64,000 bases of DNA from IMGVR_UViG_3300042540_001399:186001-250000, one strand, 5' to 3'. Shown: positions 7,637 to 58,344, counted from the stretch's first letter. Made by a program: numbers and translations. The notes: generated by a model from the sequence alone, not told the origin.

Positions 7637-7671
7637 GTTCCGAAGTATAATTCCATTATACATCCACTACT

Positions 7672-7698
7672 AAACCCCAATTTTTTTGGGGTTTTTTT
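7672..7698 (+). terminator. intrinsic terminator
   Basis: AAACCCCAA/TTGGGGTTT stem plus T tract. Confidence 0.75.
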
Positions 7699-7721
7699 GT
7701 TTAATTTATATTTATAAGAAT

Positions 7722-8381
7722 ATGGAAAAAAGAATTTCAGATAAAAAAAGTAGAAACTTTATATTCAGAAGATATGGGTACATTAGACCAATAATCGATA
7801 GGGAAAAAAAAGACCAAGAACCTTGTTATTATAAAGATAAATATGGTGAGTTTGAAGGGTTCAAATACTACATGGAAACCGTTTCCACATCGGTTGTTGA
7901 GTTTATAATGTATTCTTTACCTGACTTTCATGATATGGATTCTGATGAAGAAGAAAATATGGTTGATAGTCTTTTAGGAGCCTTTGACGATATGTTTTTT
8001 AATGAAATCGAAGAATATTATTTTAATTTTGATTGTGGTGAATATTTTCAAAACTTGTCCACAATATACGAATCGGTTTCACATCAAGTTTTAAGAAGAC
8101 TTAGAAGGATCCAAGAAGTTAGAGACACAATAGAATTCCAAATGGAAATCCAAGACCCGTGTGATTTTGAAGATAGTGAAGAATTTGCCGATTTTTGTAT
8201 TGGTGAAGGCCTAAGTTTTTTTTATGGTGATGAAAACTATGAAAGAGAAGATGATATATTTGCAGATGAAAATGATAATGAAGATAGTGGTAGGGAAGAA
8301 ATAGAACAAATGATGTATGAAGAATATTTTGACAAATTAGTTAAGTTTTGGGATGAAATTGTTAAATACGGTAACTGTTAA
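7722..8381 (+). CDS. acidic hypothetical protein with two internally similar halves
   Basis: ATG 7722; both halves end in EEYYF/EEYF-like helices. Confidence 0.7.
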   Translation: MEKRISDKKSRNFIFRRYGYIRPIIDREKKDQEPCYYKDKYGEFEGFKYYMETVSTSVVEFIMYSLPDFHDMDSDEEENMVDSLLGAFDDMFFNEIEEYYFNFDCGEYFQNLSTIYESVSHQVLRRLRRIQEVRDTIEFQMEIQDPCDFEDSEEFADFCIGEGLSFFYGDENYEREDDIFADENDNEDSGREEIEQMMYEEYFDKLVKFWDEIVKYGNC

Positions 8382-34281: not shown

Positions 34282-35339
34282 TATCAATAATAGTCACCGC
34301 ATATAATAATAAAAATTACATTCATGAATGTTTACAAAGCATTATAGAATCTTGTGGTGATGTAGATTTTGAAATTTTGTTGGGTATTGATAATTGTACA
34401 TCAACTTTGAAATCCGTGTTTCAAAAACACAAAAAATACAAAAATTTAAAAATACTCTTTTTCAAAAATAGAGTCGGAACTTACATTATAAGAAATAGTC
34501 TTGTGCCAATTTCAAAGTATGATAATATTTTATTTTTTGATTCTGATGACATCATGAAAAAAAATATGATTAATGATTTATTGTATAATATAAAAAAATA
34601 TGACTGTGTTAAACCTATGTTTTCTGGATTTAAAGATGGAGATGATATTACTTTACCCAAATTTAACACACAAAAAAACACATTTGGTGAAGGGGTATTT
34701 GCAATAAAGAAAAATGTTTTTAACGAAATGAACGGGTTTGAGCCATGGGTCTGTGCGGCAGATTCAGAGTTCAATTGGAGGTTGAGAATGAACAACAAAA
34801 CTTTTAAATACATAGAAAGGGTTTGTTTTTATTATAGAAGACATTCTACAAGTTTAACAACAAATCAAGAAACTGGAATGAGATCTAAATTGAGAATGAA
34901 ATATCATATTTTAACTAAAAACAAAAAAAATACTAAATCATTCTCACCATTGGATGAGATGGTTGTTTCGAAATTCATAGAAATAACTAACCATAATATT
35001 GATAATTTTTTAATAGACCAATTAAACCCTTCATTTGAAATACCTGAAGATAAAGGTCCCTTAGATGTTAACAATAATGAAAATGTAATTTCATTGATTT
35101 TTAATAAAACACCCAAGAAAGTTGTAGAACCAAATAAAAAACCAAAAGTTCAAATAGTTTCTAATAATCCAATAAATAATATATTAGTTAGAAAACCGAA
35201 AGTTGTTGATAAAGATAAAATCACTAAACAAAGACAAAATATTATTAACATAAAACAAAAAACTAATAGAGAAGTTTTTAACGAAATACACCCATCAAAA
35301 CCAAACCGAAGATTGGATCTTCCAAATATTAGGTTATAA
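34278..35339 (+). CDS. glycosyltransferase family 2 with basic C-terminal tail
   Basis: SIIVTAYN, GTYIIRN, FFDSDD, AADSEF. Confidence 0.85.
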   Translation: MISIIVTAYNNKNYIHECLQSIIESCGDVDFEILLGIDNCTSTLKSVFQKHKKYKNLKILFFKNRVGTYIIRNSLVPISKYDNILFFDSDDIMKKNMINDLLYNIKKYDCVKPMFSGFKDGDDITLPKFNTQKNTFGEGVFAIKKNVFNEMNGFEPWVCAADSEFNWRLRMNNKTFKYIERVCFYYRRHSTSLTTNQETGMRSKLRMKYHILTKNKKNTKSFSPLDEMVVSKFIEITNHNIDNFLIDQLNPSFEIPEDKGPLDVNNNENVISLIFNKTPKKVVEPNKKPKVQIVSNNPINNILVRKPKVVDKDKITKQRQNIINIKQKTNREVFNEIHPSKPNRRLDLPNIRL

Positions 35340-35381
35340 ATTTACATTTTGATTTTTATTTTTTATTTTTAAAATAAAAAA

Positions 35382-35561
35382 ATGTACGTTATAATCAAAC
35401 ATGTTAAAATGTCCGATAATAAAAAAAGGATACCTGTGATAATTCTTGATAGCCAAAATGAAATTTGGGAGTTTGAAGATTATGAAGAAGCTAAAAAAAT
35501 GAAAGATATTTTTGAAACTAATTCTGATTCTGGTCACATATATGAAGTAAAAAAAATATAA
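35382..35561 (+). CDS. small hypothetical protein (59 aa, not in ORF track)
   Basis: translated by hand: MYVIIKHVKM...IWEFEDYEEA...YEVKKI. Confidence 0.6.
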   Translation: MYVIIKHVKMSDNKKRIPVIILDSQNEIWEFEDYEEAKKMKDIFETNSDSGHIYEVKKI

Positions 35562-35562
35562 A

Positions 35563-35679
35563 ATGGAAGATATTCTATATGAAATACATAATGAATTTGT
35601 AAATTCTGAAGATTTTGACAAAATGTTATATGAAATGTTAATTTATTCAGAAAAGTATTGTCAATTAAAAAAAGATTAG
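35563..35679 (+). CDS. small hypothetical protein (38 aa)
   Basis: MEDILYEIHNEF...; 1 nt after upstream stop. Confidence 0.5.
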   Translation: MEDILYEIHNEFVNSEDFDKMLYEMLIYSEKYCQLKKD

Positions 35680-35687
35680 TATATTTG
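35680..35687 (+). promoter_or_regulatory. Bacteroidota sigma-A -7 promoter element upstream of leader 1
   Basis: TATATTTG with TTG at 35658-35660. Confidence 0.7.
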
Positions 35688-35732
35688 TAAAGGAATTAGA
35701 ACTTTTTAAAAAAACTGTATAATTATAATAAA

Positions 35733-35840
35733 ATGAAAAATACACTCAGACATATGGTCATTTGTAACAAGCCGAGCAATCAGTGGTCGTTTAGCTATAT
35801 TACGCGTAATCAGTCAAGGGTATTTTCACTTATGAGTTAA
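35733..35840 (+). CDS. attenuator leader peptide 1 (35 aa)
   Basis: MKNTLRHMVICNKPSNQWSFSYITRNQSRVFSLMS; codons match tRNA array 1. Confidence 0.85.
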   Translation: MKNTLRHMVICNKPSNQWSFSYITRNQSRVFSLMS

Positions 35841-35871
35841 AAACGTTTAACTAACATAATAGAAGGAATGT

Positions 35872-35908
35872 AAAACCCGAGACTTAAAAATCTCGGGTTT
35901 TTTGTTTT
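35872..35908 (+). terminator. attenuator terminator 1
   Basis: AAAACCCGAGA/TCTCGGGTTTT stem plus T tract ending 6 nt before tRNA-Thr. Confidence 0.9.
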
Positions 35909-35914
35909 ATATTA

Positions 35915-35986
35915 GCTCTGTAAGCATTGTTGGAGATGCGCCTGACTTGTAATCAGGAGAAATCAGTTCGATTCTGGTACGGAGCT
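35915..35986 (+). tRNA. tRNA-Thr(TGT)
   Basis: GCTCTGT/ACGGAGC; CCTGA-CTTGTAA-TCAGG; TTCGA. Confidence 0.9.
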
Positions 35987-35993
35987 CAAAAAG

Positions 35994-36002
35994 GTTCTTT
36001 GA
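35994..36002 (+). promoter_or_regulatory. boxA-like antitermination motif
   Basis: GTTCTTTGA; also at 39507, 39981 and 53468, all in RNA-gene leaders. Confidence 0.55.
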
Positions 36003-36019
36003 CATATTGGTCTTTATAG

Positions 36020-36090
36020 TGTTCCCTCGTCTAATGGCAGGACACGCGGTTTTGGTCCGTGGAATTGGGGTTCGAGTCCCTGGGGAACAA
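36020..36090 (+). tRNA. tRNA-Gln(TTG)
   Basis: TGTTCCC/GGGAACA; CGCGG-TTTTGGT-CCGTG. Confidence 0.92.
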
Positions 36091-36096
36091 CAATAA

Positions 36097-36180
36097 GGAA
36101 GAGTAATCACAACGGCTTGTGACTCCGTCTTGAAAACGGCAGGTACTGAAAGGTATGGGGATCGACACCTCACTCTTCCT
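36097..36180 (+). tRNA. tRNA-Ser(TGA)
   Basis: GGAAGAG/CTCTTCC; loop CTTGAAA; long variable arm; T loop ATCGACA. Confidence 0.88.
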
Positions 36181-36189
36181 CAACAATAA

Positions 36190-36262
36190 CTAGGTGTAGC
36201 TCAGATGGTAGAGCGGGTGGTTTGGGACCATCAGGCCGCAGGTTCGATCCCTGTCACTTAGA
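36190..36262 (+). tRNA. tRNA-Pro(TGG)
   Basis: CTAGGTG/CACTTAG; GGTGG-TTTGGGA-CCATC. Confidence 0.93.
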
Positions 36263-36266
36263 CAAC

Positions 36267-36342
36267 GTCTTCGTAGCTCAGTTGGTTTTAGAGCACCTCA
36301 CTTTTAATGAGGGGGTCACAGGTTCGAGCCCTGTCGGGGACA
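36267..36342 (+). tRNA. tRNA-Lys(TTT)
   Basis: GTCTTCG/CGGGGAC; CCTCA-CTTTTAA-TGAGG. Confidence 0.95.
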
Positions 36343-36384
36343 CAAAAATTTAGTAAAACTGAGCGATTTATACCAAAAAATGGT

Positions 36385-36392
36385 TATATTTG
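36385..36392 (+). promoter_or_regulatory. internal Bacteroidota -7 promoter element
   Basis: TATATTTG 17 nt before tRNA-Val. Confidence 0.6.
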
Positions 36393-36409
36393 CGTAAATA
36401 AACTAAAAA

Positions 36410-36483
36410 ACACTCTTAGCTCAGATGGTAGTAGCGGTTGTCTTACATACAACAGGTCACAGGTTCGATCCCTGTAGGGTGTA
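36410..36483 (+). tRNA. tRNA-Val(TAC)
   Basis: ACACTCT/AGGGTGT; GTTGT-CTTACAT-ACAAC. Confidence 0.92.
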
Positions 36484-36489
36484 CAATAA

Positions 36490-36575
36490 GGGAGAGTTGA
36501 GCAATTGGTTGGCTCAGCAGACTGTAAATCTGTCGTCGTAAGACCTTGGGGGTTCGAGTCCCTCCTCTCCCACCA
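36490..36575 (+). tRNA. tRNA-Tyr(GTA)
   Basis: GGGAGAG/CTCTCCC-A-CCA; loop CTGTAAA; variable arm. Confidence 0.95.
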
Positions 36576-36581
36576 CAAAAA

Positions 36582-36654
36582 GGACAAGTAGCTCAATTGG
36601 TAGAGCACCGCACTGTTAATGCGGGGGTTACAGGATCGTACCCTGTCTTGTCCG
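36582..36654 (+). tRNA. tRNA-Asn(GTT)
   Basis: GGACAAG/CTTGTCC; loop CTGTTAA; T loop ATCGTAC. Confidence 0.92.
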
Positions 36655-36660
36655 CAATAA

Positions 36661-36733
36661 GTTCACGTAGCTCAATTGGTAGAGCGCCGATCTGATACGT
36701 CGGAGGTAATGGGATCGTAACCCGTCGTGAACA
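36661..36733 (+). tRNA. tRNA-Ile(GAT)
   Basis: GTTCACG/CGTGAAC; loop CTGATAC; T loop ATCGTAA. Confidence 0.92.
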
Positions 36734-36737
36734 CTAC

Positions 36738-36821
36738 GGAAGATAAACCTTGATGGCGATAGGGTCCGCCTGCTAAGCGAGATGTACCTTTGGGTATTTG
36801 GTTCGATTCCAATGTCTTCCG
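36738..36821 (+). tRNA. tRNA-Ser(GCT)
   Basis: GGAAGA/TCTTCC; loop CTGCTAA; variable arm. Confidence 0.88.
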
Positions 36822-36827
36822 CAAAAC

Positions 36828-36897
36828 GCCGATAGGAAAGGTTTCCGATCCGGGCTCATATCCTGGATGTCATTGGGTTCGATACCCTTTATCGGTA
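36828..36897 (+). tRNA. atypical tRNA(CAT), probable elongator Met with shrunken D arm
   Basis: GCCGATA/TATCGGT; CCGGG-CTCATAT-CCTGG; D region only GGAA-AGGT-TTCC. Confidence 0.7.
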
Positions 36898-36903
36898 CTA
36901 CAT

Positions 36904-36977
36904 GGTGTATGTAGCTCAGTTGGCAGAGTGCTTGATTGTGGTTCAAGAGGTCATGGGTTCGACCCCCATCATACACA
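36904..36977 (+). tRNA. tRNA-His(GTG)
   Basis: encoded G-1, GTGTATG/CATACAC; loop TTGTGGT. Confidence 0.93.
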
Positions 36978-36978
36978 C

Positions 36979-37075
36979 AAATAGTTCACAACGGACAAGG
37001 CTTAGGCTCAAAGTGTGAGGTTATAATTCCTTATATTCCCTGAGGTGGGTGGCGAGTGGTTGACCAGAACTATTT
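36979..37075 (+). ncRNA. candidate structured RNA A
   Basis: 9-bp closing stem AAATAGTTC/GAACTATTT; no ORF. Confidence 0.45.
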
Positions 37076-37077
37076 AT

Positions 37078-37149
37078 ACCTTCGTAGCTTAATGGAAAAG
37101 CCTCAGAATACGAATCTGATGATTGGGAGTTCGACCCTCTCCGAAGGTA
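37078..37149 (+). tRNA. tRNA-Arg(ACG)
   Basis: ACCTTCG/CGAAGGT; TCAGA-ATACGAA-TCTGA. Confidence 0.92.
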
Positions 37150-37150
37150 C

Positions 37151-37283
37151 AAAAGATGATAGGAAGCGTAGAACAACGGACACGGAGGGGTGTTCGCAAG
37201 GGTACACACTAAGAATATATTTCTCTCTAAGGGTGTGTGAAGTCATACGATGGGATTCCTGATAAAGTTGTTCATCATCTTTT
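37151..37283 (+). ncRNA. candidate structured RNA B
   Basis: AAAAGATGAT/ATCATCTTTT and GAACAAC/GTTGTTC stems, internal hairpins. Confidence 0.55.
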
Positions 37284-37287
37284 ATTT

Positions 37288-37359
37288 ACCCCTTTCGTAT
37301 AATGGAAGTACAACACTCTTCTAAGGTGTCAGGTTGGAGTTCGAATCTCTGAGGGGGTA
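37288..37359 (+). tRNA. tRNA-Arg(TCT)
   Basis: ACCCCTT/AGGGGGT; ACACT-CTTCTAA-GGTGT. Confidence 0.9.
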
Positions 37360-37370
37360 CAACAAAATAC

Positions 37371-37441
37371 GCGTCTCTGGTGTAATGGTAGCATGATGGA
37401 TTCCAAACCCATCGGTCAGGGTTCGAGCCCTTGGGGACGCG
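37371..37441 (+). tRNA. tRNA-Trp(CCA)
   Basis: GCGTCTC/GGGACGC; ATGGA-TTCCAAA-CCCAT. Confidence 0.88.
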
Positions 37442-37449
37442 CTAATTAA

Positions 37450-37522
37450 GGACAGGTAGCTCAGTTGGTAGAGCGTTGGACTGAAGATCCAAGCGTCGGG
37501 GGTTCAATTCCCTCCCTGTCCA
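37450..37522 (+). tRNA. tRNA-Phe(GAA)
   Basis: GGACAGG/CCTGTCC; TTGGA-CTGAAGA-TCCAA. Confidence 0.95.
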
Positions 37523-37568
37523 CAAAATAAAATTTGTAATTTCTAACAAAAACCATTATCTTTGTATA

Positions 37569-38063
37569 ATGAAACATTTACCATACGAAGCTACAGGAAA
37601 GGCAATTAAGGGATATTCTGAATCAGAAACCGCTAGACGTGAAACAAATGACTGTGTGGTTAGAGCATTTGCATCGTCATTTGAAGTGTCTTATGATTAT
37701 GCCCATAAGTTTGTTGCGGATGAATTTGGTAGAAGACCAAGAAAAGGAACTTACGGAACTGTATCAAAACTTGTCAAAATGGCCGACAGTTTATTTAAAG
37801 TTAATGGTAAAAAAGTTTGTCCTGTTGGTATTAGACACAACGATAATATGTTAAGATCTTTGATGTATGATGTTAAAGTGAAAGGGGAAATTAAAAAAAG
37901 AAATATGACTGTTGGGACATTTGTTAAACAAAATCCAAAAGGAACTTTTTTTGTTTTGGTTAGACGACACGCATTTACAATCAAAGATGGTGTTGTAATT
38001 GGTAATTGGGATGACGCTATAAAAACAAAAAGACCAATGAGATGTGCCTTCAGAATTAAATAA
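37569..38063 (+). CDS. phage protein with NDCVVRA...HAF.I.DG motif (possible Cys-His-Asp peptidase fold)
   Basis: TATCTTTG -7 element at 37557-37564; Cys, His and Asp motif residues. Confidence 0.65.
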   Translation: MKHLPYEATGKAIKGYSESETARRETNDCVVRAFASSFEVSYDYAHKFVADEFGRRPRKGTYGTVSKLVKMADSLFKVNGKKVCPVGIRHNDNMLRSLMYDVKVKGEIKKRNMTVGTFVKQNPKGTFFVLVRRHAFTIKDGVVIGNWDDAIKTKRPMRCAFRIK

Positions 38064-38075
38064 AAAAATAAAAAA

Positions 38076-38531
38076 ATGAACCGTGTATTTAGAACGGTGG
38101 AAGGGGTTTCTATACCTGATATTGTAAAACATACTATTGATATTCTTAAAGAATGTCCATATGCTGAAATACACATTGGTACAGACTCACAAAACCATAG
38201 AAGATCAACCGTGTATGTTACGGCAATAGCATATAGATATGGTAACCGTGGGGTTCACTACATTTATCATAAACAAAAAATTAAAAAAATTCGTGATAAG
38301 TGGACAAGATTATGGAATGAAGCTGATTATTCGATCGAAGTTGCAAATTGGTTGACAAATAAAATAAAGGTTCAAGTTGAAATAGACCTTGATTACAATT
38401 ATCAAGAAAAGTACTTCAGTTCGAAGTTAGTTGGTCCAGCGGTTGGGTGGGTACAATCGTTAGGTTATAAGGCAAATATAAAACCAAATAATCAAATTGC
38501 AACAAGAGCGGCAGACCACCACTGTCGTTAA
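38076..38531 (+). CDS. RNase H-like YkuK family protein
   Basis: IGTDSQ, RLWNEA, DLDYN, IKP...AADH. Confidence 0.8.
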   Translation: MNRVFRTVEGVSIPDIVKHTIDILKECPYAEIHIGTDSQNHRRSTVYVTAIAYRYGNRGVHYIYHKQKIKKIRDKWTRLWNEADYSIEVANWLTNKIKVQVEIDLDYNYQEKYFSSKLVGPAVGWVQSLGYKANIKPNNQIATRAADHHCR

Positions 38532-38533
38532 TT

Positions 38534-38605
38534 GGTCGGGTGTCTGATGGGTAAAGTCTCGGTCTGCAAAACCGTAGTATGTGGGTTCGAATCCCACCCC
38601 GACCT
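38534..38605 (+). tRNA. tRNA-Cys(GCA)
   Basis: GGTCGGG/CCCGACC, U73; loop CTGCAAA. Confidence 0.9.
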
Positions 38606-38614
38606 CAACAAAAT

Positions 38615-38688
38615 GCCCCTATGGCGGAATTGGTATACGCGTGTGACTTAGGATCACAATCTTGCAGGTTCGAGTCCTGCTGGGGGTA
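38615..38688 (+). tRNA. tRNA-Leu(TAG), short variable loop
   Basis: GCCCCTA/TGGGGGT; TGTGA-CTTAGGA-TCACA; variable region ATCTT. Confidence 0.9.
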
Positions 38689-38727
38689 CAAATATTTTTA
38701 TTAGTATATTTATACTAAAAGATTATT

Positions 38728-39318
38728 ATGAAAAAGATTATAAGACTTACTGAATCAGATCTCGCTCGTATAGTTGGACGAGTTATTAAAGAAGAATATG
38801 ATGAAGATGATGAAGTGGAGGTTACACCTGAAATGATTATCAAAATGCTTATGGATAGTGCCGAATCAACCCCACAAGAAAATTATGATGACCTATATGA
38901 TTGGATGCAAGATGTATTTTCACCGGTTGAAAGTGAACTTGAGGATATGGGGTATGATATTGACGACCTTCGTATGACATATGATGATGTTATAATGAGT
39001 TTATGGGATGATAATGATGAAGATGATGAGGAATCATTATATGAATCAGATCTCGCTCGTATCGTTAAACAAGTTATTAGTGAATCTAAAAAGAATCTTA
39101 GTAAATCTGAAATATTGAAGATGTCAAAAGATGAGCTAAAAGATGTTTATGGTGAATTGGAAGTAAAAGGTGAGTATCACGGAAACAAAGGAACATTCCA
39201 CCACTTCAAAAGAACTGCAATCGGAGATATTGTCTGTAGTTTTAGAACTGATGACTCAACACCATCAGGATTGAAAAGAAATACTCAAGGAATTAAAGTC
39301 AAAAATTTAGATTTTTAA
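38728..39318 (+). CDS. protein with two LxESDL motifs
   Basis: MKKIIRLTESDLARIV and internal LYESDLARIV; ATATTTAT 38706-38713. Confidence 0.8.
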   Translation: MKKIIRLTESDLARIVGRVIKEEYDEDDEVEVTPEMIIKMLMDSAESTPQENYDDLYDWMQDVFSPVESELEDMGYDIDDLRMTYDDVIMSLWDDNDEDDEESLYESDLARIVKQVISESKKNLSKSEILKMSKDELKDVYGELEVKGEYHGNKGTFHHFKRTAIGDIVCSFRTDDSTPSGLKRNTQGIKVKNLDF

Positions 39319-39324
39319 TAAAAC

Positions 39325-39356
39325 TTGACACTTTTGAAATTATTAGTATATTTATA
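39325..39356 (+). promoter_or_regulatory. promoter upstream of leader 2
   Basis: TTGACA 39325-39330 and TATATTTATA 39347-39356. Confidence 0.6.
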
Positions 39357-39377
39357 AAACAAATTAAAAAACCGCAA

Positions 39378-39446
39378 ATGAAAAATTTACACATATTATT
39401 GATAGGGGGCGATTTAGCTGAAGCAACTTTCAAGAAGAGGGTGTAA
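39378..39446 (+). CDS. attenuator leader peptide 2 (22 aa)
   Basis: MKNLHILLIGGDLAEATFKKRV; codons match tRNA array 2. Confidence 0.85.
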   Translation: MKNLHILLIGGDLAEATFKKRV

Positions 39447-39469
39447 TATTTTATACATTTAATATTTAG

Positions 39470-39504
39470 AACCCCTCTTCCAAAAAAGAGGGGTTTTTTG
39501 TTTT
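39470..39504 (+). terminator. attenuator terminator 2
   Basis: AACCCCTCTT/AAGAGGGGTT plus T tract; boxA-like motif and tRNA-Leu follow. Confidence 0.9.
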
Positions 39505-39530
39505 AGGTTCTTTGAAATAATGGTAATAAT

Positions 39531-39615
39531 GGTTCGGTGGTGGAATTGGCAATACACGACAGGTTTAAGCCCTGTTTCCCATTGAGGATTGTGGGTTCGA
39601 GTCCCACCCGGACTA
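39531..39615 (+). tRNA. tRNA-Leu(TAA)
   Basis: GGTTCGG/CCGGACT; ACAGG-TTTAAGC-CCTGT; variable arm. Confidence 0.93.
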
Positions 39616-39620
39616 CAACA

Positions 39621-39716
39621 AAAACACATAAACTTTGGTTCCCACACAGCGGTGAGACGGGGTAAGTTATATACAATTTCTCGGGGCTGGAAGTAGAAAG
39701 CCAAAGAATGTGTTTT
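39621..39716 (+). ncRNA. candidate rod-like structured RNA C (6S-like?)
   Basis: AAAACACAT/ATGTGTTTT, CTTTGGTT/AGCCAAAG, CAGC/GCTG, GAGA/TCTC nested stems. Confidence 0.55.
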
Positions 39717-39777
39717 TTTAAAAAAAACTTTACAAAGTATTTGGTAGAACAAAATAAAAAATTTAATTTTGTAATAA

Positions 39778-39894
39778 ATGAAGACAATTGAAGTTACATA
39801 TCAAGAAATCAAAATGGCAACAAGGCCAAATGTGTATAAAAATAAAAAAAAATACACAAGAAAAGAAAAACATAAAAAAGATTTGGTAGATTAA
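39778..39894 (+). CDS. small basic protein, ArfA-like motif (38 aa)
   Basis: MKTIEVTYQEIKMATRPNVYKNKKKYTRKEKHKKDLVD; TAATTTTG at 39764-39771. Confidence 0.6.
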   Translation: MKTIEVTYQEIKMATRPNVYKNKKKYTRKEKHKKDLVD

Positions 39895-39905
39895 AAAAAA
39901 TCTTA

Positions 39906-39989
39906 TATCTTTGTTAAACAAATGACGGGGGTAGGAAAATTAGTGTTGTGGATTCCTACTCCCGTGTAAAAGGGAAGAAAGTTCTTTGA
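39906..39989 (+). promoter_or_regulatory. -7 promoter, 13-bp hairpin and boxA-like motif (rrn-leader-like)
   Basis: TATCTTTG 39906-39913; ACGGGGGTAGGAA/TTCCTACTCCCGT 39925-39965; GTTCTTTGA 39981-39989. Confidence 0.6.
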
Positions 39990-40000
39990 TTTAAAATATT

Positions 40001-40081
40001 GTGGTTGTAAGCAATGGGAAACTCGTTAAGTACATCAACCAGTTGGCTCAAGATGGTGAAACGAGAGTGTGAGTCAACTAC
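40001..40081 (+). ncRNA. candidate structured RNA D
   Basis: GTGGTTG/CAACTAC, CTCGTT/AACGAG, CATC/GATG nested stems. Confidence 0.45.
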
Positions 40082-40103
40082 TAAATCACAAAAAAAATGA
40101 AAT

Positions 40104-40228
40104 AGGCAAGTGGCGGAATTTATGGCAGACGCTTAGGTTGATTCCCCGTAAGAAGTCACCGAGATATAGCTGGGGATGTCTCTTGAAAAGGGAACTATAT
40201 CGTACAGGTTCGAATCCTGTTTTGCCTA
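40104..40228 (+). ncRNA. tRNA-like RNA with expanded anticodon/variable region and pseudoknot
   Basis: AGGCAAG/TTTGCCT acceptor, Leu-type D arm, ACAGG-TTCGAAT-CCTGT T arm, ~70-nt insert. Confidence 0.75.
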
Positions 40229-40233
40229 CACAT

Positions 40234-40306
40234 CGCGGGATGTGGAAGATGGTTATCCGCTCGGTCTCATAAGCCGAGATCGCCGGTTCGAGTCCGGCTC
40301 CCGCAA
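40234..40306 (+). tRNA. initiator tRNA-fMet(CAT)
   Basis: C1:A72 mismatch, CGCGGGA/TCCCGCA; loop CTCATAA. Confidence 0.9.
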
Positions 40307-40311
40307 CTTAA

Positions 40312-40371
40312 AGGGTGGATAGGTGGAAGGGCCTTTCCTGAAAGACGGTTTACTAGGCCCGTGTCCACCCT
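40312..40371 (+). ncRNA. candidate small structured RNA E
   Basis: AGGGTGGATA/TGTCCACCCT and GGGCCT/AGGCCC stems. Confidence 0.45.
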
Positions 40372-40382
40372 ACTGAATTTAT

Positions 40383-40463
40383 GCTGACGTACCAGTGGAT
40401 GCTTATATCATCTATACCTGTAGCGGTAAGTTGAAAACGTTGGTTCGAATCCAACCGTCAGTA
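40383..40463 (+). tRNA. D-armless tRNA-like RNA with TAT anticodon-like loop
   Basis: GCTGACG/CGTCAGT; GGATG-CTTATAT-CATCT; GTTGG-TTCGAAT-CCAAC; 7-nt D replacement. Confidence 0.6.
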
Positions 40464-40466
40464 CGG

Positions 40467-40610
40467 GAGTGTATGCAGTAGAGATCTGCTTATGATGGTA
40501 GGGACAAACACTTTAAAAAAGGGTCCCAAAGAGATAAGCCGTTTAGTAGTTTTGGTCGATAAAAACTAACGGATTTTATAGTAATGGTTCACCGATCGAA
40601 ACCAATACTC
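40467..40610 (+). ncRNA. candidate multibranched RNA F
   Basis: GAGTGT/ATACTC closing stem with four internal hairpins. Confidence 0.5.
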
Positions 40611-40681
40611 ATGATGTCAGAAAGGTTGATCACCTAATTCATGTAAACACCGTGACAACACCCCAAAGTTGTCACACTTTT

Positions 40682-40757
40682 GCGGGAGTAGCTCAATTGG
40701 TAGAGTTCCAGCCTTCCAAGCTGGCTGTTGAGGGTTCGAATCCCTTCTCCCGCTCCA
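40682..40757 (+). tRNA. tRNA-Gly(TCC)
   Basis: GCGGGAG/CTCCCGC-T-CCA; loop CTTCCAA. Confidence 0.95.
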
Positions 40758-40761
40758 AGTT

Positions 40762-40834
40762 GGGCCTGATGCCGACGGCAGGTCGAGTGGTTTGCAACCA
40801 CATCGTTTGGGTTCGATTCCCACAGTGTCCACCA
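40762..40834 (+). tRNA. atypical tRNA-Ala(TGC)
   Basis: G3:U70, A73, encoded CCA; GTGG-TTTGCAA-CCAC; bulged acceptor stem. Confidence 0.75.
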
Positions 40835-41007
40835 AATAAACAAAAAAACAAAGTAGTGATGAAGGAAGTTTTGTCAGGAACTTTAAAATCAAGAAAAGTT
40901 AATTTTGTTCAGATTGAAAATAACAGTGATTTTTTAAGTTCTTTAAGAAAAAAAATAAAAAAAAGAATAAGTAATTTAAAAAAAACAATTAAATTTGTAA
41001 AAAAAAG

Positions 41008-41087
41008 AAGATGAGTTTCCCTACATCCCGGATTAGTGAGAAACTTAAAGAGGGACAAAAGTGGTACACAAGTCCACGACTCATCTT
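41008..41087 (+). ncRNA. candidate structured RNA G
   Basis: AAGATGAGT/ACTCATCTT closing stem, two hairpins; TAAATTTG at 40990-40997. Confidence 0.45.
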
Positions 41088-41092
41088 AATTT

Positions 41093-41164
41093 GGTCGGTT
41101 CATCTAGGGGTCAGGATACAAGGTTTTCATCCTTGTCACACGGGTTCGAATCCCGTACCGACTA
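41093..41164 (+). tRNA. tRNA-Glu(TTC)
   Basis: GGTCGGT/ACCGACT; CAAGG-TTTTCAT-CCTTG. Confidence 0.93.
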
Positions 41165-41189
41165 CAAACCTGTCAAGGTAGTACAGGAA

Positions 41190-41305
41190 GGTCAGGAGTG
41201 TAATGAGGCACGGTGCCAAGTCCTAAAGACACCACGGTCCAAGAGCAATTTGGACGCGAGAAGTTATAAGGTTGCTCATTGTAGGTTCGAATCCTACCCT
41301 GACTT
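41190..41305 (+). ncRNA. tRNA-like RNA: acceptor plus T arm with novel 84-nt body
   Basis: GGTCAGG/CCTGACT; GTAGG-TTCGAAT-CCTAC; AATGAG/CTCATT and GTCCAA/TTGGAC stems. Confidence 0.7.
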
Positions 41306-41307
41306 CA

Positions 41308-41455
41308 CGGTTCGGATCATCACCGAATAGTATGCCCAATACGATGAGAAATGAGGTGATACCTCATATGGGACTTCTGATAGATAAAGGATCTATTCGG
41401 TTTGACTAACCGCGGGAAATATCAAAGAGGGTTGAAGAACTACGTACCCTCGAGT
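41308..41455 (+). ncRNA. candidate multi-hairpin RNA H
   Basis: CCGAATAG/CTATTCGG, ATGAGG/CCTCAT, CGGTT/AACCG, GAGGG/CCCTC. Confidence 0.4.
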
Positions 41456-41461
41456 CCAATT

Positions 41462-41536
41462 GGTCCATTGGTGTAGTGGCTAACATTCATCCCTGTCACG
41501 GATGAGCCGCGAGTTCGATTCTCGCATGGACCGCCA
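41462..41536 (+). tRNA. tRNA-Asp(GTC)
   Basis: GGTCCAT/ATGGACC-G-CCA; CATCC-CTGTCAC-GGATG. Confidence 0.95.
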
Positions 41537-41558
41537 AACTTATTAAAAATTAACCATT

Positions 41559-41828
41559 ATGAAAACTTTTCAAGACTTGGAATTTATAAAAATAAATGAT
41601 GCACCGTTTATGGTTGGTAAAAAATCCCGTATGCATTTTGATAATGGGTTCGGTGTATCTGTTGTATCACACTCTTATTCATATGGGGGTCGTGATGGTC
41701 TTTATGAAGTCGCGGTCCTTGACTCTGACGACAATCTTACCTACGATACTCCAATAACCAATGATGTAATGGGTTACTTAACTGAACAAGATGTTACTAA
41801 TGTCATGAAACAAGTTCAAGAGCTATAA
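41559..41828 (+). CDS. hypothetical phage protein
   Basis: 89 aa; FDNGFGVSVV...GGRDGLYEVAVL. Confidence 0.75.
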   Translation: MKTFQDLEFIKINDAPFMVGKKSRMHFDNGFGVSVVSHSYSYGGRDGLYEVAVLDSDDNLTYDTPITNDVMGYLTEQDVTNVMKQVQEL

Positions 41829-41913
41829 AAGATGACAGTTTTTTTATTCATAACATTTTTAACGACACTTTTTTTGTTGAGAAAAAAAAGAAAGTTTTAA
41901 GTAGATAAAAAAA

Positions 41914-41987
41914 GGTCTCTTAGCTCATTAGGTTAGAGCAACTGACTCATAATCAGTAGGTGGTTGGTTCGATCCCAACAGGGACCA
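41914..41987 (+). tRNA. tRNA(CAT), Ile2 (lysidine)-type
   Basis: GGTCTCT/AGGGACC; GACTCATAATC anticodon arm as in bacterial tRNA-Ile2 (recalled, not searched). Confidence 0.8.
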
Positions 41988-42032
41988 CAAAAGTATTGAA
42001 TATTTTAAAACAGAAATTATTATTTATAATAT

Positions 42033-42106
42033 GCACCCGTAGCTCAGCTGGATAGAGCAACTGCCTTCTAAGCAGTAGGTCAATGGTTCGAATCCATTCG
42101 GGTGTA
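42033..42106 (+). tRNA. tRNA-Arg(TCT), second copy
   Basis: GCACCCG/CGGGTGT; ACTGC-CTTCTAA-GCAGT. Confidence 0.95.
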
Positions 42107-42178
42107 CTTTTTTTTTATTTTTTTTTTGGAAATCAAAAAGTTTCCTGTATCTTTGTTGAAATAAATAACGATAAAGAT

Positions 42179-42928
42179 ATGACAACAGACATCACAGCAC
42201 AGGTAAAAAATTACAACGGTAAAAATTCATTCATTTTGAAAATGAAAGACGCAATTAGTAAATATGGATCACTTACTGTGAACCAAAAATCTGCAGTAGA
42301 AAAAATTTTTAAGAATGTTGATGAAGTAAAGTCAGTTGAAATGACTGAAGATCTTAAGAAAATTGCATCCTATGACGGGCCAAATTCTTTTGTTTTGGAT
42401 ATTAAAAATAAACTTACTCAATATGGTAAACTTTCTGAAAAACAAATTTCGGCTGGTTTGAAGCAAATCGACAAAGAACAAAACAAAACTGTTGTTCGTA
42501 AAGTTAATGTACCAGCAATTGGTGATACTATCAAAGTTGGTAGAAAAATTGGTCAACAACTTAAAGAAAAATACGGTCTTAATTTTAACCCAATTTTGTT
42601 GGACATCACAAAAGTTTTATCGTTTTCTGCTAAAGCTGTAAAATTTTCAGGTAAAATGACCGTAAAACGTGGTGACGTTTGTGTGTGTTGTGCAAAAACT
42701 CTTACCGATGAGTTTTCAATGTTAACTAAAATGGGTAAGACATGTGCGAAACACATGGGTGTTGAGTACATCACAGACGCAAGTGAGGCGGATAAATTCC
42801 GTGAAGAGTACCTACGTCGTGTTGAAGAAATTGGTGAAATGGAATTTTGGGTTCCAAATTCCCAAATTAAATCTTGGGAAGGAGACACTAATGTTCTTCA
42901 AAAAATGTCACACCTTTGGTTCAAATAA
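42179..42928 (+). CDS. protein with two N-terminal repeats and a Zn-finger (DUF6011-like)
   Basis: YNGKNSF...YGSLT..Q repeated; CVCCAKTLTD..S...MGKTCA. Confidence 0.7.
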   Translation: MTTDITAQVKNYNGKNSFILKMKDAISKYGSLTVNQKSAVEKIFKNVDEVKSVEMTEDLKKIASYDGPNSFVLDIKNKLTQYGKLSEKQISAGLKQIDKEQNKTVVRKVNVPAIGDTIKVGRKIGQQLKEKYGLNFNPILLDITKVLSFSAKAVKFSGKMTVKRGDVCVCCAKTLTDEFSMLTKMGKTCAKHMGVEYITDASEADKFREEYLRRVEEIGEMEFWVPNSQIKSWEGDTNVLQKMSHLWFK

Positions 42929-43023
42929 AAAAAAAGTGGGGTTTGTTCATCAATAGAACGGCCCCACTCATTTTGTATTTTTTTGTTAAAATTTTTTATT
43001 ATTTATATTATAAACATCATCAC

Positions 43024-43113
43024 ATGGACAACTCAATCATAGCGGCAATATTAACACCAATAGTTCTATTTGGTATTTTTCTTTATTTCTACTTTACAGA
43101 TAAAGAATACTAA
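43024..43113 (+). CDS. small membrane peptide (29 aa)
   Basis: MDNSIIAAILTPIVLFGIFLYFYFTDKEY after TATTTAT. Confidence 0.5.
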   Translation: MDNSIIAAILTPIVLFGIFLYFYFTDKEY

Positions 43114-43117
43114 AGTT

Positions 43118-43726
43118 TTATTTTATATCGGTAGACTCTAAAAGTGTGTAAGAAAATTTGTTACCATGGATTTTTGCCGCTTTTTTACATATTGACATAA
43201 ATTCATCAAAATCTTTAACTCTTTTAAATACCTGACATCCTTCGGACCAATTTTCAACCCAAGTCGAGTCCTGACCGGCTTTGTGTATGTTAATACCAAA
43301 CATTCCTGTGTCTGTTTTAGTTTCTTCAAAAATTAAATCTTTATTAGAATCTCTCCAAACTGTTACATTACCTAATCTTTGGCAAAGAGCGTCGTATTTC
43401 CCTTGATGTTTATCAATTTTCCAAACACCTCGATACTGGCCGGGTACTAATCTTGCAACGCCATTTTTGTTGTGAAATTCCATGACCCCTTTTTTACCAG
43501 GATCACATGTTGCCATCCAACAATGAAATTTCCAACTGCCTGTTTCGTCTTTATAAGTTATCGTTAGACAATCATCAAAAACATTTGTGACTTTGTCAGC
43601 AACACTTGGTTCATTATTTCTAACACCAACAATATTTACATCATAACCTTTGTTAGATGCGTCGTCAAACCATTTAAAATTTTTTGATTTGACAGTAGTT
43701 TCTATTTGTTCTTTTGTATAACACAT
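43118..43726 (-). CDS. YkuD/L,D-transpeptidase-like cell-wall enzyme
   Basis: GINIH...NWSEGCQVF His/Cys motif. Confidence 0.65.
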   Translation of the reverse strand: MCYTKEQIETTVKSKNFKWFDDASNKGYDVNIVGVRNNEPSVADKVTNVFDDCLTITYKDETGSWKFHCWMATCDPGKKGVMEFHNKNGVARLVPGQYRGVWKIDKHQGKYDALCQRLGNVTVWRDSNKDLIFEETKTDTGMFGINIHKAGQDSTWVENWSEGCQVFKRVKDFDEFMSICKKAAKIHGNKFSYTLLESTDIK

Positions 43727-58316: not shown

Positions 58317-58344
58317 AAAAGGAGGACTTTTAATCCTCCTTTTT
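58316..58344. terminator. bidirectional terminator
   Basis: AAAAAGGAGGA/TCCTCCTTTTT. Confidence 0.85.

Follow-up and report, generated by a model that had tools for sequence, protein, structure and literature searches.

What controls the transcription of the tRNA genes that a phage carries in separate arrays, and can their expression respond to the supply of the very tRNAs that they encode? This question was raised by a 64,000-nucleotide stretch of phage DNA (IMGVR_UViG_3300042540_001399:186001-250000, hereafter the window), in which a 22-codon reading frame precedes the second of two tRNA arrays, is built largely from the codons read by the tRNAs encoded downstream, and has a tail that can pair with a transcription terminator. 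The initial annotation proposed that this frame is a second, independent codon-sensing attenuator. Here, our analyses supported this reading by every test that we could compute, and we found no earlier description of this kind of control for tRNA genes. Albeit in the absence of experimental data on translation, termination or read-through, we consider it likely that the unit is a ribosome-mediated transcription attenuator that turns on the second array when its tRNAs run short.

Organization of the second tRNA array and its leader

Inspection of the window confirmed the reading frame, its codons, the 8-bp pairing and the terminator described in the initial annotation. The leader unit comprises the following features:

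39325..39356 (+), promoter-like site assigned as the promoter of leader 2, with TTGACA(C) at 39325-39330 and GTATATTTATA at 39346-39356
39378..39446 (+), leader ORF 2, 22 codons, MKNLHILLIGGDLAEATFKKRV
39387..39425 (+), proposed sensing block, codons 4-16
39434..39441 (+), antiterminator strand GAAGAGGG, in codons 19-22, 3-10 nt upstream of the stop codon
39468..39504 (+), predicted intrinsic terminator with 5' arm 39468-39479, loop 39480-39485, 3' arm 39486-39497 and T-run 39494-39504
39507..39523 (+), post-terminator motif GTTCTTTGAAATAATGG, a variant of GTTCTTTGACATATTGG, of unknown function

The promoter-like site was the best in the region (11 of 12 matches), and both of its elements are invariant in nearly all of the 29 sequence variants described below. 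The terminator consists of a GC-rich stem at 39468-39497 (12 pairs, 6-nt loop) followed by T6-G-T4 to 39504, and lies 27 nt upstream of the first tRNA gene. The antiterminator strand GAAGAGGG is the exact reverse complement of CCCTCTTC at 39473-39480, a stretch that covers 7 nt of the terminator's 5' arm plus the first loop base. Notably, the post-terminator motif recurs directly after the terminator T-run in relatives and in unrelated leader units.

The genes and elements downstream of the terminator were identified with ARAGORN at standard and relaxed thresholds, together with RNA folding and alignment to relatives:

39531..39616 (+), tRNA-Leu(taa), the first gene after the attenuator
39620..39719 (+), long imperfect hairpin ending in a T7 run, a possible terminator or structured RNA after tRNA-Leu
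39906..39914 (+), internal promoter-like element TATCTTTGT (TAnnTTTG type) inside array 2
40234..40307 (+), tRNA(cat) with a C1xA72 mismatch, initiator-like
40381..40465 (+), tRNA-Ile(tat)-like RNA with a short D arm and a long variable arm
40682..40757 (+), tRNA-Gly(tcc)
40762..40830 (+), tRNA-Ala(tgc), slightly non-canonical
41093..41165 (+), tRNA-Glu(ttc)
41462..41536 (+), tRNA-Asp(gtc)
41914..41988 (+), tRNA(cat), either elongator Met or Ile2, not resolved
42033..42107 (+), tRNA-Arg(tct), the last tRNA of array 2

tRNA-Ala(tgc) was detected only at the relaxed threshold, although Ala-tgc is called at the same position in relatives. The RNA at 40381-40465, which the initial annotation referred to as a TAT-loop RNA, aligns with the tRNA-Ile(tat) of relatives, and the same variant form occurs in the loci that we labelled L013 and L050. 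One assignment required correction: the initial annotation counted an Ile2-CAT tRNA among the downstream genes, yet the C1xA72 mismatch of the tRNA at 40234-40307 is typical of an initiator tRNA, and this tRNA is therefore not clearly an Ile2 tRNA.

A sister unit precedes array 1 (35915-38689) in the same window:

35658..35901 (+), promoter 35658-35685, leader ORF 1 at 35733-35840 and terminator 35872-35901

Both leaders start with MKN. Leader 1 uses exactly the 16 amino acids whose tRNAs are encoded in array 1.

Codon content of the two leaders

Twelve of the 13 codons 4-16 of leader 2 are UUR-Leu, AUA-Ile, Gly, Asp, Ala or Glu codons read by array-2 tRNAs, the only exception being cac. In contrast, leader 1 contains no Gly, Ala, Asp, Glu, UUR or AUA codon (0 of 34). 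Codons of these classes (UUR, AUA, GGN, GCN and GAN) account for 32.3% of the 15,668 codons in the window's genes, and the observed partition is far from chance. None of 200,000 34-codon windows drawn from the window's own genes lacks array-2 codons, and only 0.05% of 13-codon windows hold 12 or more. Moreover, among 251 mechanically defined ATG ORFs of 20-45 codons in the window, leader 1 is the only one of 30 or more codons with none, and leader 2 is the only one with at least 55%. Notably, leader 2 also holds Lys, Asn and His codons, which belong to array 1, at codons 2, 3 and 5, and is therefore not fully independent of array 1. Each amino acid is represented by one to four scattered codons rather than by a tandem run, which may sense weakly.

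The partition extends to synonymous codons, as leader 1 uses CUN for Leu and AUU for Ile while leader 2 uses UUR and AUA, compared with 70% UUR and 39% AUA in the phage's genes. Interestingly, the codon usage of the leader is unlike that of the phage's genes (adaptation index 0.40-0.47 against 0.71), which fits a sensor but also fits non-coding sequence.

Conservation of the frame, the codon classes and the pairing in relatives

Comparison with related jumbo-phage contigs yielded 29 leader-2 and 28 leader-1 variants at 70-93% identity, all of which keep the ORF. The only indels in leader ORF 2 are two of 3 nt each, and indels inside the ORFs are 3 nt apart from one 4-nt run at the stop codon of leader 1, whereas outside the ORFs they are mostly 1-2 nt. 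Substitutions tend to stay within the codon class: variant codon states of array-2 type amount to 22 of 33 in the leader 2 block (expected 36%, p=2.9e-4), 3 of 88 in leader 1 (expected 15%, p=5.5e-4) and 0 of 18 in the leader 2 tail. The division of tRNAs between the two arrays is likewise conserved in 27 distinct relatives. With regard to translation signals, the window's genes lack Shine-Dalgarno sequences (1 of 64), and they carry the same promoter element as the leaders at the same distance from the ATG, with TATATTTAT located 10-25 nt upstream of the ATG of many genes in the window.

The antiterminator strand and the 5' arm of the terminator change together, with GAAGAGGG/CCCTCTTC, GGAGATGG/CCATCTCC, GAAGATGG/CCATCTTC and, in a distant relative (L071), GGGTGGGT/ACCCACCC all occurring. 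Across 20 strand/arm haplotypes, the duplex within a sequence averages -15.1 kcal/mol against -12.3 across sequences, a value reached in 0 of 5000 permutations. The position 64:113 pair switches between A-U and G-C in both clades without a matching change in the 3' arm, and the terminator stem itself shows CG/AU covariation at one pair (14 against 13 sequences). In L071, the antiterminators have different sequences (GGTTCGG/CCGAACC and GGGTGGGT/ACCCACCC); Thr-tgt and Leu-tag have moved to its second array, and its second leader has gained three Thr and two CUU codons.

These findings bear on the possibility that the unit is a free-standing small gene whose 22-residue peptide is the product, with an incidental match to the tRNAs. 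In support of this notion, the unit is complete with promoter, ORF and terminator, the peptide is fairly conserved in close relatives, and some relatives have a separate promoter after the terminator. However, this hypothesis gives no reason for the ORF tail to pair, with covariation, with the terminator's 5' arm, nor for the synonymous codon partition; non-conservative replacements such as Asp to Ala stay within the codon class, and the leader peptides of the other units described below are unrelated in sequence while each mirrors its own array. We thus regard it as very unlikely.

Predicted dependence of the switch on ribosome position

To examine how a translating ribosome might affect the alternative structures, we folded the leader with a masked ribosome footprint. 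The antiterminator duplex 39434-39441/39473-39480 (-12.4 kcal/mol) forms when the A site is at codons 2-15 or 16 and is blocked from codon 17 to the stop codon, which is the boundary of the array-matched block. Based on these results, we propose that transcription starts a few bases after the TATATTTATA element and that a ribosome loads at the ATG (39378) without a Shine-Dalgarno sequence, as on the phage's other genes. A ribosome that reads all 22 codons and reaches the tail or stop codon would cover GAAGAGGG, so that the hairpin 39468-39497 forms and transcription ends at the T-run. A ribosome stalled in codons 2-16 would leave GAAGAGGG free to pair with CCCUCUUC (39473-39480) as soon as that stretch is made, and RNA polymerase would run on into tRNA-Leu(taa) and beyond. 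A stall in codons 4-16 would report a shortage of the charged tRNAs that array 2 encodes, and the switch would behave as an OR gate in which shortage of any one of them turns on the array that supplies them, providing feedback control and possibly a response to loss of host tRNAs. Leader 1 would do the same for the other 16 amino acids, although its antiterminator in the window is weak (-7.4 kcal/mol).

The terminator hairpin (-16.8 kcal/mol) is more stable than the antiterminator, so the decision must be kinetic. Notably, no anti-antiterminator (a 1:2 hairpin) was found: the hairpin 39399-39433 does not sequester the antiterminator strand, and in the nascent RNA without a ribosome the antiterminator also forms. 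The switch may therefore read through whenever the leader is not translated to its end, which raises the alternative that the unit reports general translation capacity (ribosome supply or global inhibition), with the codon content being secondary. Yet a general sensor needs no particular codons, whereas synonymous Leu and Ile codons split by array, leaders in the same phage differ and each matches its own array, and array-matched codons sit in the zone where stalling would matter. This alternative is therefore considered unlikely.

How much of the array the attenuator governs remains open. The promoter-like TATCTTTGT site at 39906 lies inside array 2, and in some relatives (L025, L039 and L013) such elements lie between the leader-2 terminator and the first tRNA, while the hairpin at 39620-39719 (-29 kcal/mol) bears on how far read-through transcription extends. 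Most array-2 tRNAs may thus also, or mainly, be transcribed independently of the attenuator. Accordingly, it remains possible, though in our view improbable, that the attenuator governs only the proximal gene or genes (tRNA-Leu(taa) in the window) and that internal promoters drive the remaining tRNAs; in clade-2 relatives, tRNA-Leu(taa) is not the first gene after the leader. Against this, the leader carries codons for all array-2 amino acids and not only Leu, including in relatives where Leu-taa has moved away, and leaders of other units on average represent nearly all amino acids of the whole downstream array.

Recurrence of the design in other phage tRNA arrays

A motif search revealed about 20 unrelated-looking leader-terminator-tRNA units in other phage contigs. 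Over 20 non-redundant units, recall of the array's amino acids is 0.96 in the own leader against 0.71 in others, with full coverage in 16 of 20 units, precision is 0.62 against 0.43, and the codon-level match is 0.52 against 0.33 (all P<1e-5). Each ORF tail pairs with its own terminator arm (-11.85 against -6.67 kcal/mol, P<1e-5). The 20 units may share distant ancestry, and the permutation P values therefore overstate independence. Within one phage, recall is 0.94 for the own array against 0.53 for a sibling array. Furthermore, array-matched codons lie upstream of the point where a stalled ribosome would cover the antiterminator, with array-matched residues constituting 68% of the sensing zone against 38% of the tail (Fisher 1e-7).

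Comparison with known regulatory systems

The proposed mechanism is that of the well-established leader-peptide attenuators of amino-acid biosynthesis operons (trp, his, leu, pheA and the multivalent thr and ilvGMEDA), in which a short translated ORF is followed by an intrinsic terminator, an alternative pairing uses the terminator's 5' arm, ribosome position decides which structure forms, and regulatory codons report charged-tRNA supply. The thr and ilv leaders already sense more than one amino acid, and the leu leader uses rare codons, as do the leaders described here. In the present case, however, the regulated genes are tRNA genes and not biosynthetic enzymes, the leader holds scattered codons for 6 to 16 different amino acids instead of a run for one to three, no 1:2 anti-antiterminator was found (a feature present in trp but not universal among attenuators), and the element is phage-borne in a setting without Shine-Dalgarno sequences.

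T-box riboswitches also sense the state of a specific tRNA and switch a terminator/antiterminator upstream of translation-related genes, but a T-box binds one uncharged tRNA directly through a specifier codon and the T-box sequence, without a ribosome. In an Rfam covariance-model scan of 35000-43500, no family other than tRNA reached its gathering score; the sub-threshold rows (tRNA-Sec, Plastid-ycf2, YrlA, AgrB, sX4 and tmRNA) lie elsewhere in the scanned region, and 39325-39530 has no match at all, including T-box, at E of 1 or less. No T-box was found in 12 related loci either, where only tRNA matches were returned, plus one GOLLD RNA elsewhere in the locus labelled L136. Since the leader is only about 145 nt and would need to recognise six or more tRNAs, and since frame conservation and the 3-nt indels suggest coding, a T-box-like or other RNA element that binds tRNA directly without translation appears a remote possibility.

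Phage tRNAs that act as counter-defence against tRNA-cleaving immunity (PMC10264068, PMC11555353, PMC11464382) give a biological reason for a phage to monitor and replace specific tRNAs; as far as their titles and abstracts show, these papers describe the tRNAs themselves, and none of the phage-tRNA papers listed contains the term leader peptide. The trn operon of Anabaena PCC 7120, with 26 tRNA genes on a megaplasmid, is controlled at initiation by the protein repressor TrcR (PMC10272220) and not by a leader peptide and terminator. In antibiotic-sensing leader peptides and uORFs (ermC, cat, mef/mel and topAI; for example PMC4335068 and bioRxiv 10.1101/682021), ribosome stalling in a short upstream ORF also remodels the RNA and turns on downstream genes, but the stall is caused by a drug together with the nascent peptide, not by codon or tRNA supply, and the output is a resistance gene.

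Leader ORF 2 and the second tRNA array
The sequence proved to be as described in the initial annotation, which had reported a leader ORF made largely of codons read by the downstream tRNAs and a perfect 8-bp pairing between its tail and the 5' arm of the following terminator. The elements of this unit are as follows:
39325-39352, TTGACA-16-TATATT, the best promoter-like site of the region
39378-39446, leader ORF 2, 22 codons, MKNLHILLIGGDLAEATFKKRV
39434-39441, GAAGAGGG, in the ORF tail, the exact complement of 39473-39480
39468-39497, strong terminator-like hairpin of 12 pairs, with a T-run to 39504
39473-39480, CCCTCTTC, in the terminator's 5' arm
39531, start of tRNA-Leu(taa)
40234, CAT tRNA with a C1xA72 mismatch
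40381-40465, the "TAT-loop RNA", a tRNA-Ile(tat)-like RNA
40762-40830, tRNA-Ala(tgc), called by ARAGORN at a relaxed threshold

Downstream of tRNA-Leu(taa), ARAGORN and Rfam identified Met-cat, Gly-tcc, Glu-ttc, Asp-gtc, Met-cat and Arg-tct. The TAT-loop RNA, which has a truncated D arm and a long variable arm, aligns with the tRNA-Ile(tat) found at the same place in relatives; the same variant form occurs in the related loci L013 and L050, while other relatives have a standard Ile-tat tRNA. One detail of the initial annotation, which had matched the AUA codons of the leader to an Ile2-CAT tRNA as well as to the TAT-loop RNA, needs correction. The C1xA72 mismatch of the CAT tRNA at 40234 is typical of initiator tRNA, and AUA is therefore more likely served by the TAT-loop tRNA than by an Ile2 tRNA.

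Genomic context and the parallel upstream unit
The window comes from an AT-rich jumbo phage, and three IMG/VR contigs of 274-291 kb carry the regions compared at 100% identity. No close relative was found in the GenBank phage collection, either by DNA or by the RNase H-like marker protein, no cultured host is known, and PHROGs names few of the window's large proteins, although a large FtsH-like ATP-dependent protease gene (58330-60390, minus strand; phrog_4871, E=2e-236) is present. The phage's genes lack Shine-Dalgarno sequences (1 of 64 against a 6.6% background) and are preceded at 10-25 nt by TATATTTAT or TATCTTTGT elements, which are of the TAnnTTTG type that probably occurs in Bacteroidota. 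The lack of Shine-Dalgarno sequences and these two promoter-element flavours suggest a Bacteroidota-like host and perhaps two temporal classes of promoter. Notably, both leader ORFs have this same promoter-to-ATG layout.

A parallel unit sits upstream and precedes the first tRNA array:
35658-35685, promoter of leader 1
35733-35840, leader ORF 1
35872-35901, terminator
35915-38689, array 1

The relaxed tRNA search added Ser-tga (36097-36181), Ser-gct (36738-36822) and Met-cat (36827-36898) to array 1, which with these encodes 18 tRNAs for 16 amino acids. These are exactly the 16 amino acids used in leader 1, and both Ser codon boxes and both Arg boxes are represented in the leader. Array 2 supplies Gly, Ala, Asp and Glu, plus the UUR-Leu and AUA-Ile isoacceptors.

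Codon content of the two leaders
To assess whether this correspondence exceeds chance, the codons read by array-2 tRNAs (UUR, AUA, GGN, GCN, GAN) were designated class 2; they make up 32.3% of 15,668 codons in the window's long ORFs. Leader 1 has 0 of 34 class 2 codons, and none of 200,000 gene windows of that length has so few, while codons 4-16 of leader 2 have 12 of 13, a value reached by only 0.05% of gene windows. Among 251 mechanical ATG ORFs of 20-45 codons in the window, the two leaders are the unique extremes. Interestingly, the split also holds for synonymous codons. Leader 1 uses CUN for Leu and AUU for Ile, matching Leu-tag and Ile-gat in array 1, whereas leader 2 uses UUR and AUA, matching Leu-taa and Ile-tat in array 2; the phage's genes use 70% UUR and 39% AUA. 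A constraint on peptide function cannot explain a synonymous split. Leader 2, however, begins with Lys, Asn and (at codon 5) His codons, which belong to array 1.

The leaders also favour rare synonymous codons, namely CCG, CAG, UCG, AGC and ACG in leader 1 and GGG and GGC in leader 2, and their adaptation index is 0.40-0.47 against 0.71 for genes, which would sharpen the response of a sensor.

Conservation of the leaders in close relatives
A marker protein encoded inside the array, an RNase H-like protein (38076-38531; PF04308, E=6e-26) located just before Cys and Leu-tag, retrieved 62 related loci. This gene is conserved at that place in all relatives and may act in tRNA processing. The related loci gave 29 distinct leader-2 and 28 distinct leader-1 sequences at about 70-93% identity, all of which keep the ATG, the frame and the stop. 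Inside the ORFs, indels are 3 nt, apart from one 4-nt run at the stop codon of leader 1, whereas outside they are mostly 1-2 nt. The division of tRNAs between the two arrays is conserved in 27 distinct arrangements.

The leader peptides vary a good deal, but the variation stays in class. In leader 1 (codons 2-30), 3 of 88 variant codon states are class 2 (15% expected from one-base neighbours, p=5.5e-4), compared with 22 of 33 in the leader 2 block (36% expected, p=2.9e-4) and 0 of 18 in the leader 2 tail. Non-conservative changes such as Asp to Ala or Leu to Ile occur within the class. In addition, AGA occurs inside the sensing block in five variants, four of which have an Arg-tct tRNA in array 2, against one of about 21 others; this is suggestive only, because it reflects at most two independent origins. 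The device is not universal, as relatives of the L074/L076 type have no leader in front of their array, only simple promoters.

Antiterminator pairing and the ribosome footprint
The strand in the ORF tail and the terminator's 5' arm change together among the related loci.

Table. Tail strand and terminator 5' arm in the window and in related loci (L numbers).
Sequences; tail strand; 5' arm; pairing
Window; GAAGAGGG; CCCTCTTC; perfect
L043; GGAGAGGG; CCCTCTCC; perfect
L050, L020, L067; GGAGATGG; CCATCTCC; perfect
L048; GAAGATGG; CCATCTTC; perfect
L037; GGAGGTGG; CCATCTCC; one G-U pair

The A-U/G-C switch at the loop-side end occurs in both clades without a matching change in the 3' arm and is therefore specific to the antiterminator helix. 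A few variants carry one mismatch (L025, L054, L065) or a weak pairing (L056). Since the MAFFT alignments place the 5' arm in registers that differ by one column between clades, and one sequence has a 1-nt indel, the pairing was evaluated by duplex energies with permutation instead of by counting aligned pairs. Over 20 haplotypes, the within-sequence duplex averages -15.1 kcal/mol against -12.3 for cross pairings, and none of 5000 permutations reaches the observed value. By contrast, the antiterminator of leader 1 in the window is weak and shows no clear covariation.

We then folded the nascent RNA up to 39486 with a masked ribosome footprint (A site -18 to +11). The 8-bp helix forms when the A site is at codons 2-15 (7 pairs at codon 16) and is blocked from codon 17 to the stop. 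This boundary is where the array-matched block ends, in agreement with the initial annotation, which had argued that the pairing explains why the last codons are not array-matched. Notably, the complete transcript prefers the terminator (-32.6 against -28.9 kcal/mol with the antiterminator forced), and the choice must therefore be kinetic.

Leader units in a distant relative and in other phages
The distant relative L071, with only 58% identity in the marker protein, carries two leader units with quite different antiterminator sequences, GGTTCGG/CCGAACC and GGGTGGGT/ACCCACCC, each within the last seven codons before the stop. Thr-tgt and Leu-tag have moved to its second array, and its second leader (MFNLGTILLLTAETDLLFRVGMV) holds three Thr and two CUU codons.

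A motif that follows the terminator T-run (TTTTTTGTTCTTTGACAT) retrieved 59 further loci, which hold many other short ORF-terminator-tRNA units with unrelated peptides that mirror their arrays. The motif GTTCTTTGACATATTGG directly follows the terminator T-run of most leader units (39507-39523 in the window, 3346-3362 and 7547-7563 in L071, and many loci among L090-L147) and also precedes some internal tRNAs. We rejected its reading as a promoter, since its TTGACA lies only 15-20 nt from the tRNA 5' end; it could be a processing site, a pause site or a factor-binding site. A scan of genome contigs with the 23-nt post-terminator motif gave three hits in Bacteroidia, Bacteroidetes and Ignavibacteria MAGs, none with a terminator or tRNAs nearby, and these hits are therefore uninformative about the motif or the host.

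Table. Leader peptides and downstream tRNAs in three loci retrieved with the post-terminator motif.
Locus; leader peptide; tRNAs downstream
L124; MKNTLYSSLYASLGTG; Tyr, Ser-gct, Ser-tga, Leu-tag, Leu-taa, Ala
L109; MKTLLDILLVSLMAVALLWDDDAEEVRKVGFIEGDRG; Asp, Asp, Glu, Val, Leu, Leu, Ala, Trp
L132; MKTIFNISPSILRPSIRRS; Ser, Arg, Pro, Ile, Met, Leu

In L124 the leader uses uua, cua, agu and uca, so it covers both isoacceptors of Leu and of Ser. The contig L132 carries three different leader units in a row (1093, 5592 and 6760), each in front of a different tRNA subset, which suggests modular sensor-plus-array cassettes. Another contig with a leader-tRNA unit, L136, also carries a GOLLD RNA (7644-8058, minus strand; RF02032, 280.7 bits).

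Table. Comparison of leaders with their own and with control arrays for 20 non-redundant units (under 50% peptide identity), with ORFs chosen blind to tRNA content.
Measure; own; control; test
Share of the array's amino acids present in the leader (recall); 0.96; 0.71 (other arrays); P<1e-5
Share of leader residues matched by the array; 0.62; 0.43 (other arrays); P<1e-5
Strict-wobble codon match; 0.52; 0.33 (other arrays); P<1e-5
Last 27 nt of ORF against terminator 5' arm (kcal/mol); -11.85; -6.67 (other arms), -5.79 (preceding 27 nt of the same ORF); P<1e-5
Recall within one phage; 0.94; 0.53 (sibling array); none
Array-matched residues, sensing zone against tail (13 units with a clear antiterminator); 68%; 38% (tail); Fisher 1e-7

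In those 13 units, 93% of the array's amino acids occur in the sensing zone. The units may be distantly related, so these P values overstate independence; the direction and size of the effects are nevertheless clear. The within-phage comparison excludes genome-wide codon usage as the cause.

Proposed mechanism
Although it rests on sequence analysis alone, the best-supported model is classical ribosome-mediated attenuation, which we consider likely and which supports the interpretation of the initial annotation that leader 2 is a second codon-sensing attenuator. In this model, a ribosome that reaches the tail or the stop covers the antiterminator strand and the terminator then forms, whereas a ribosome stalled at any earlier codon leaves the strand free to capture the 5' arm, and RNA polymerase reads into the tRNA genes. 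Because the sensing codons are those read by the tRNAs downstream, each array would be induced by shortage of any of its own products, which amounts to feedback control. No 1:2 anti-antiterminator was found, and untranslated RNA would also read through. Furthermore, array 2 contains a TATCTTTGT promoter-like site at 39906, in several relatives such a site lies between the leader-2 terminator and the first tRNA, and a long hairpin with a T7 run (39620-39719) follows tRNA-Leu. The attenuator may therefore be one of several inputs, or may act at a particular stage of infection.

The element would work like the trp, his, leu, thr and ilv attenuators, with which it shares regulatory codons, a terminator, and a competing antiterminator placed by ribosome position, while the conserved ORF supports the fourth structural hallmark without showing translation. 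It differs from them in that it controls tRNA genes, carries scattered codons for 6 to 16 amino acids, and has no identified anti-antiterminator. It is not a T-box and matches no Rfam cis-regulatory family. The nearest regulated accessory tRNA array found, the Anabaena trn operon, uses a protein repressor (PMC10272220), and full-text searches of a collection that does not cover all journals found no report of leader-peptide control of a tRNA array in phages or cells.

Phage tRNA genes have been debated for decades, first as codon compensation and recently as replacements for tRNAs cut by host immunity, while their regulation is little described. A role of the leaders in answering host tRNA-cleaving defences is an inference from current literature on phage tRNAs (PMC10264068, PMC11555353, PMC11464382). 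More tentatively, the leaders could be the sensor half of modular "sensor plus tRNA array" cassettes widespread in freshwater jumbo phages. Each cassette would measure, by ribosome stalling on a peptide that spells out its own tRNA set, whether the host still supplies those tRNAs, and would switch on the phage copies when host tRNAs are destroyed, for example by anticodon nucleases or other tRNA-cleaving defences, or by the phage's own shut-off of the host. Such a cassette would be an inducible counter-defence and the first leader-peptide control of tRNA genes. If the leaders work as the sequence indicates, phages measure the charged-tRNA pool codon by codon and express each tRNA block on demand, and leader-peptide attenuation extends to RNA genes and to "pangram" leaders that cover up to 16 amino acids. 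The question of what phage tRNAs are for would then become directly testable, because the leader states which shortages the phage expects. The design may also serve as a compact, programmable sensor of tRNA or codon supply.

Other features of array 2
Two tRNA-like RNAs in array 2 (40103-40229 and 41186-41306) have intact acceptor and T arms but carry 40-50 nt of extra sequence in the middle (Rfam tRNA 27.2 and 21.5 bits, below threshold); ARAGORN calls the second one a "Phe(aaa) with intron", which is doubtful. GC-richer, strongly folding spacers lie between the tRNAs (39920-40100, 40308-40380, 40466-40681 and 41306-41461), for example the hairpins at 39925-39965 and 40312-40371, and none matches an Rfam family. 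Small lysine-rich ORFs of 38 and about 51 residues, possibly coding, also lie between the tRNAs of this array (39778-39894 and 40860-41014).
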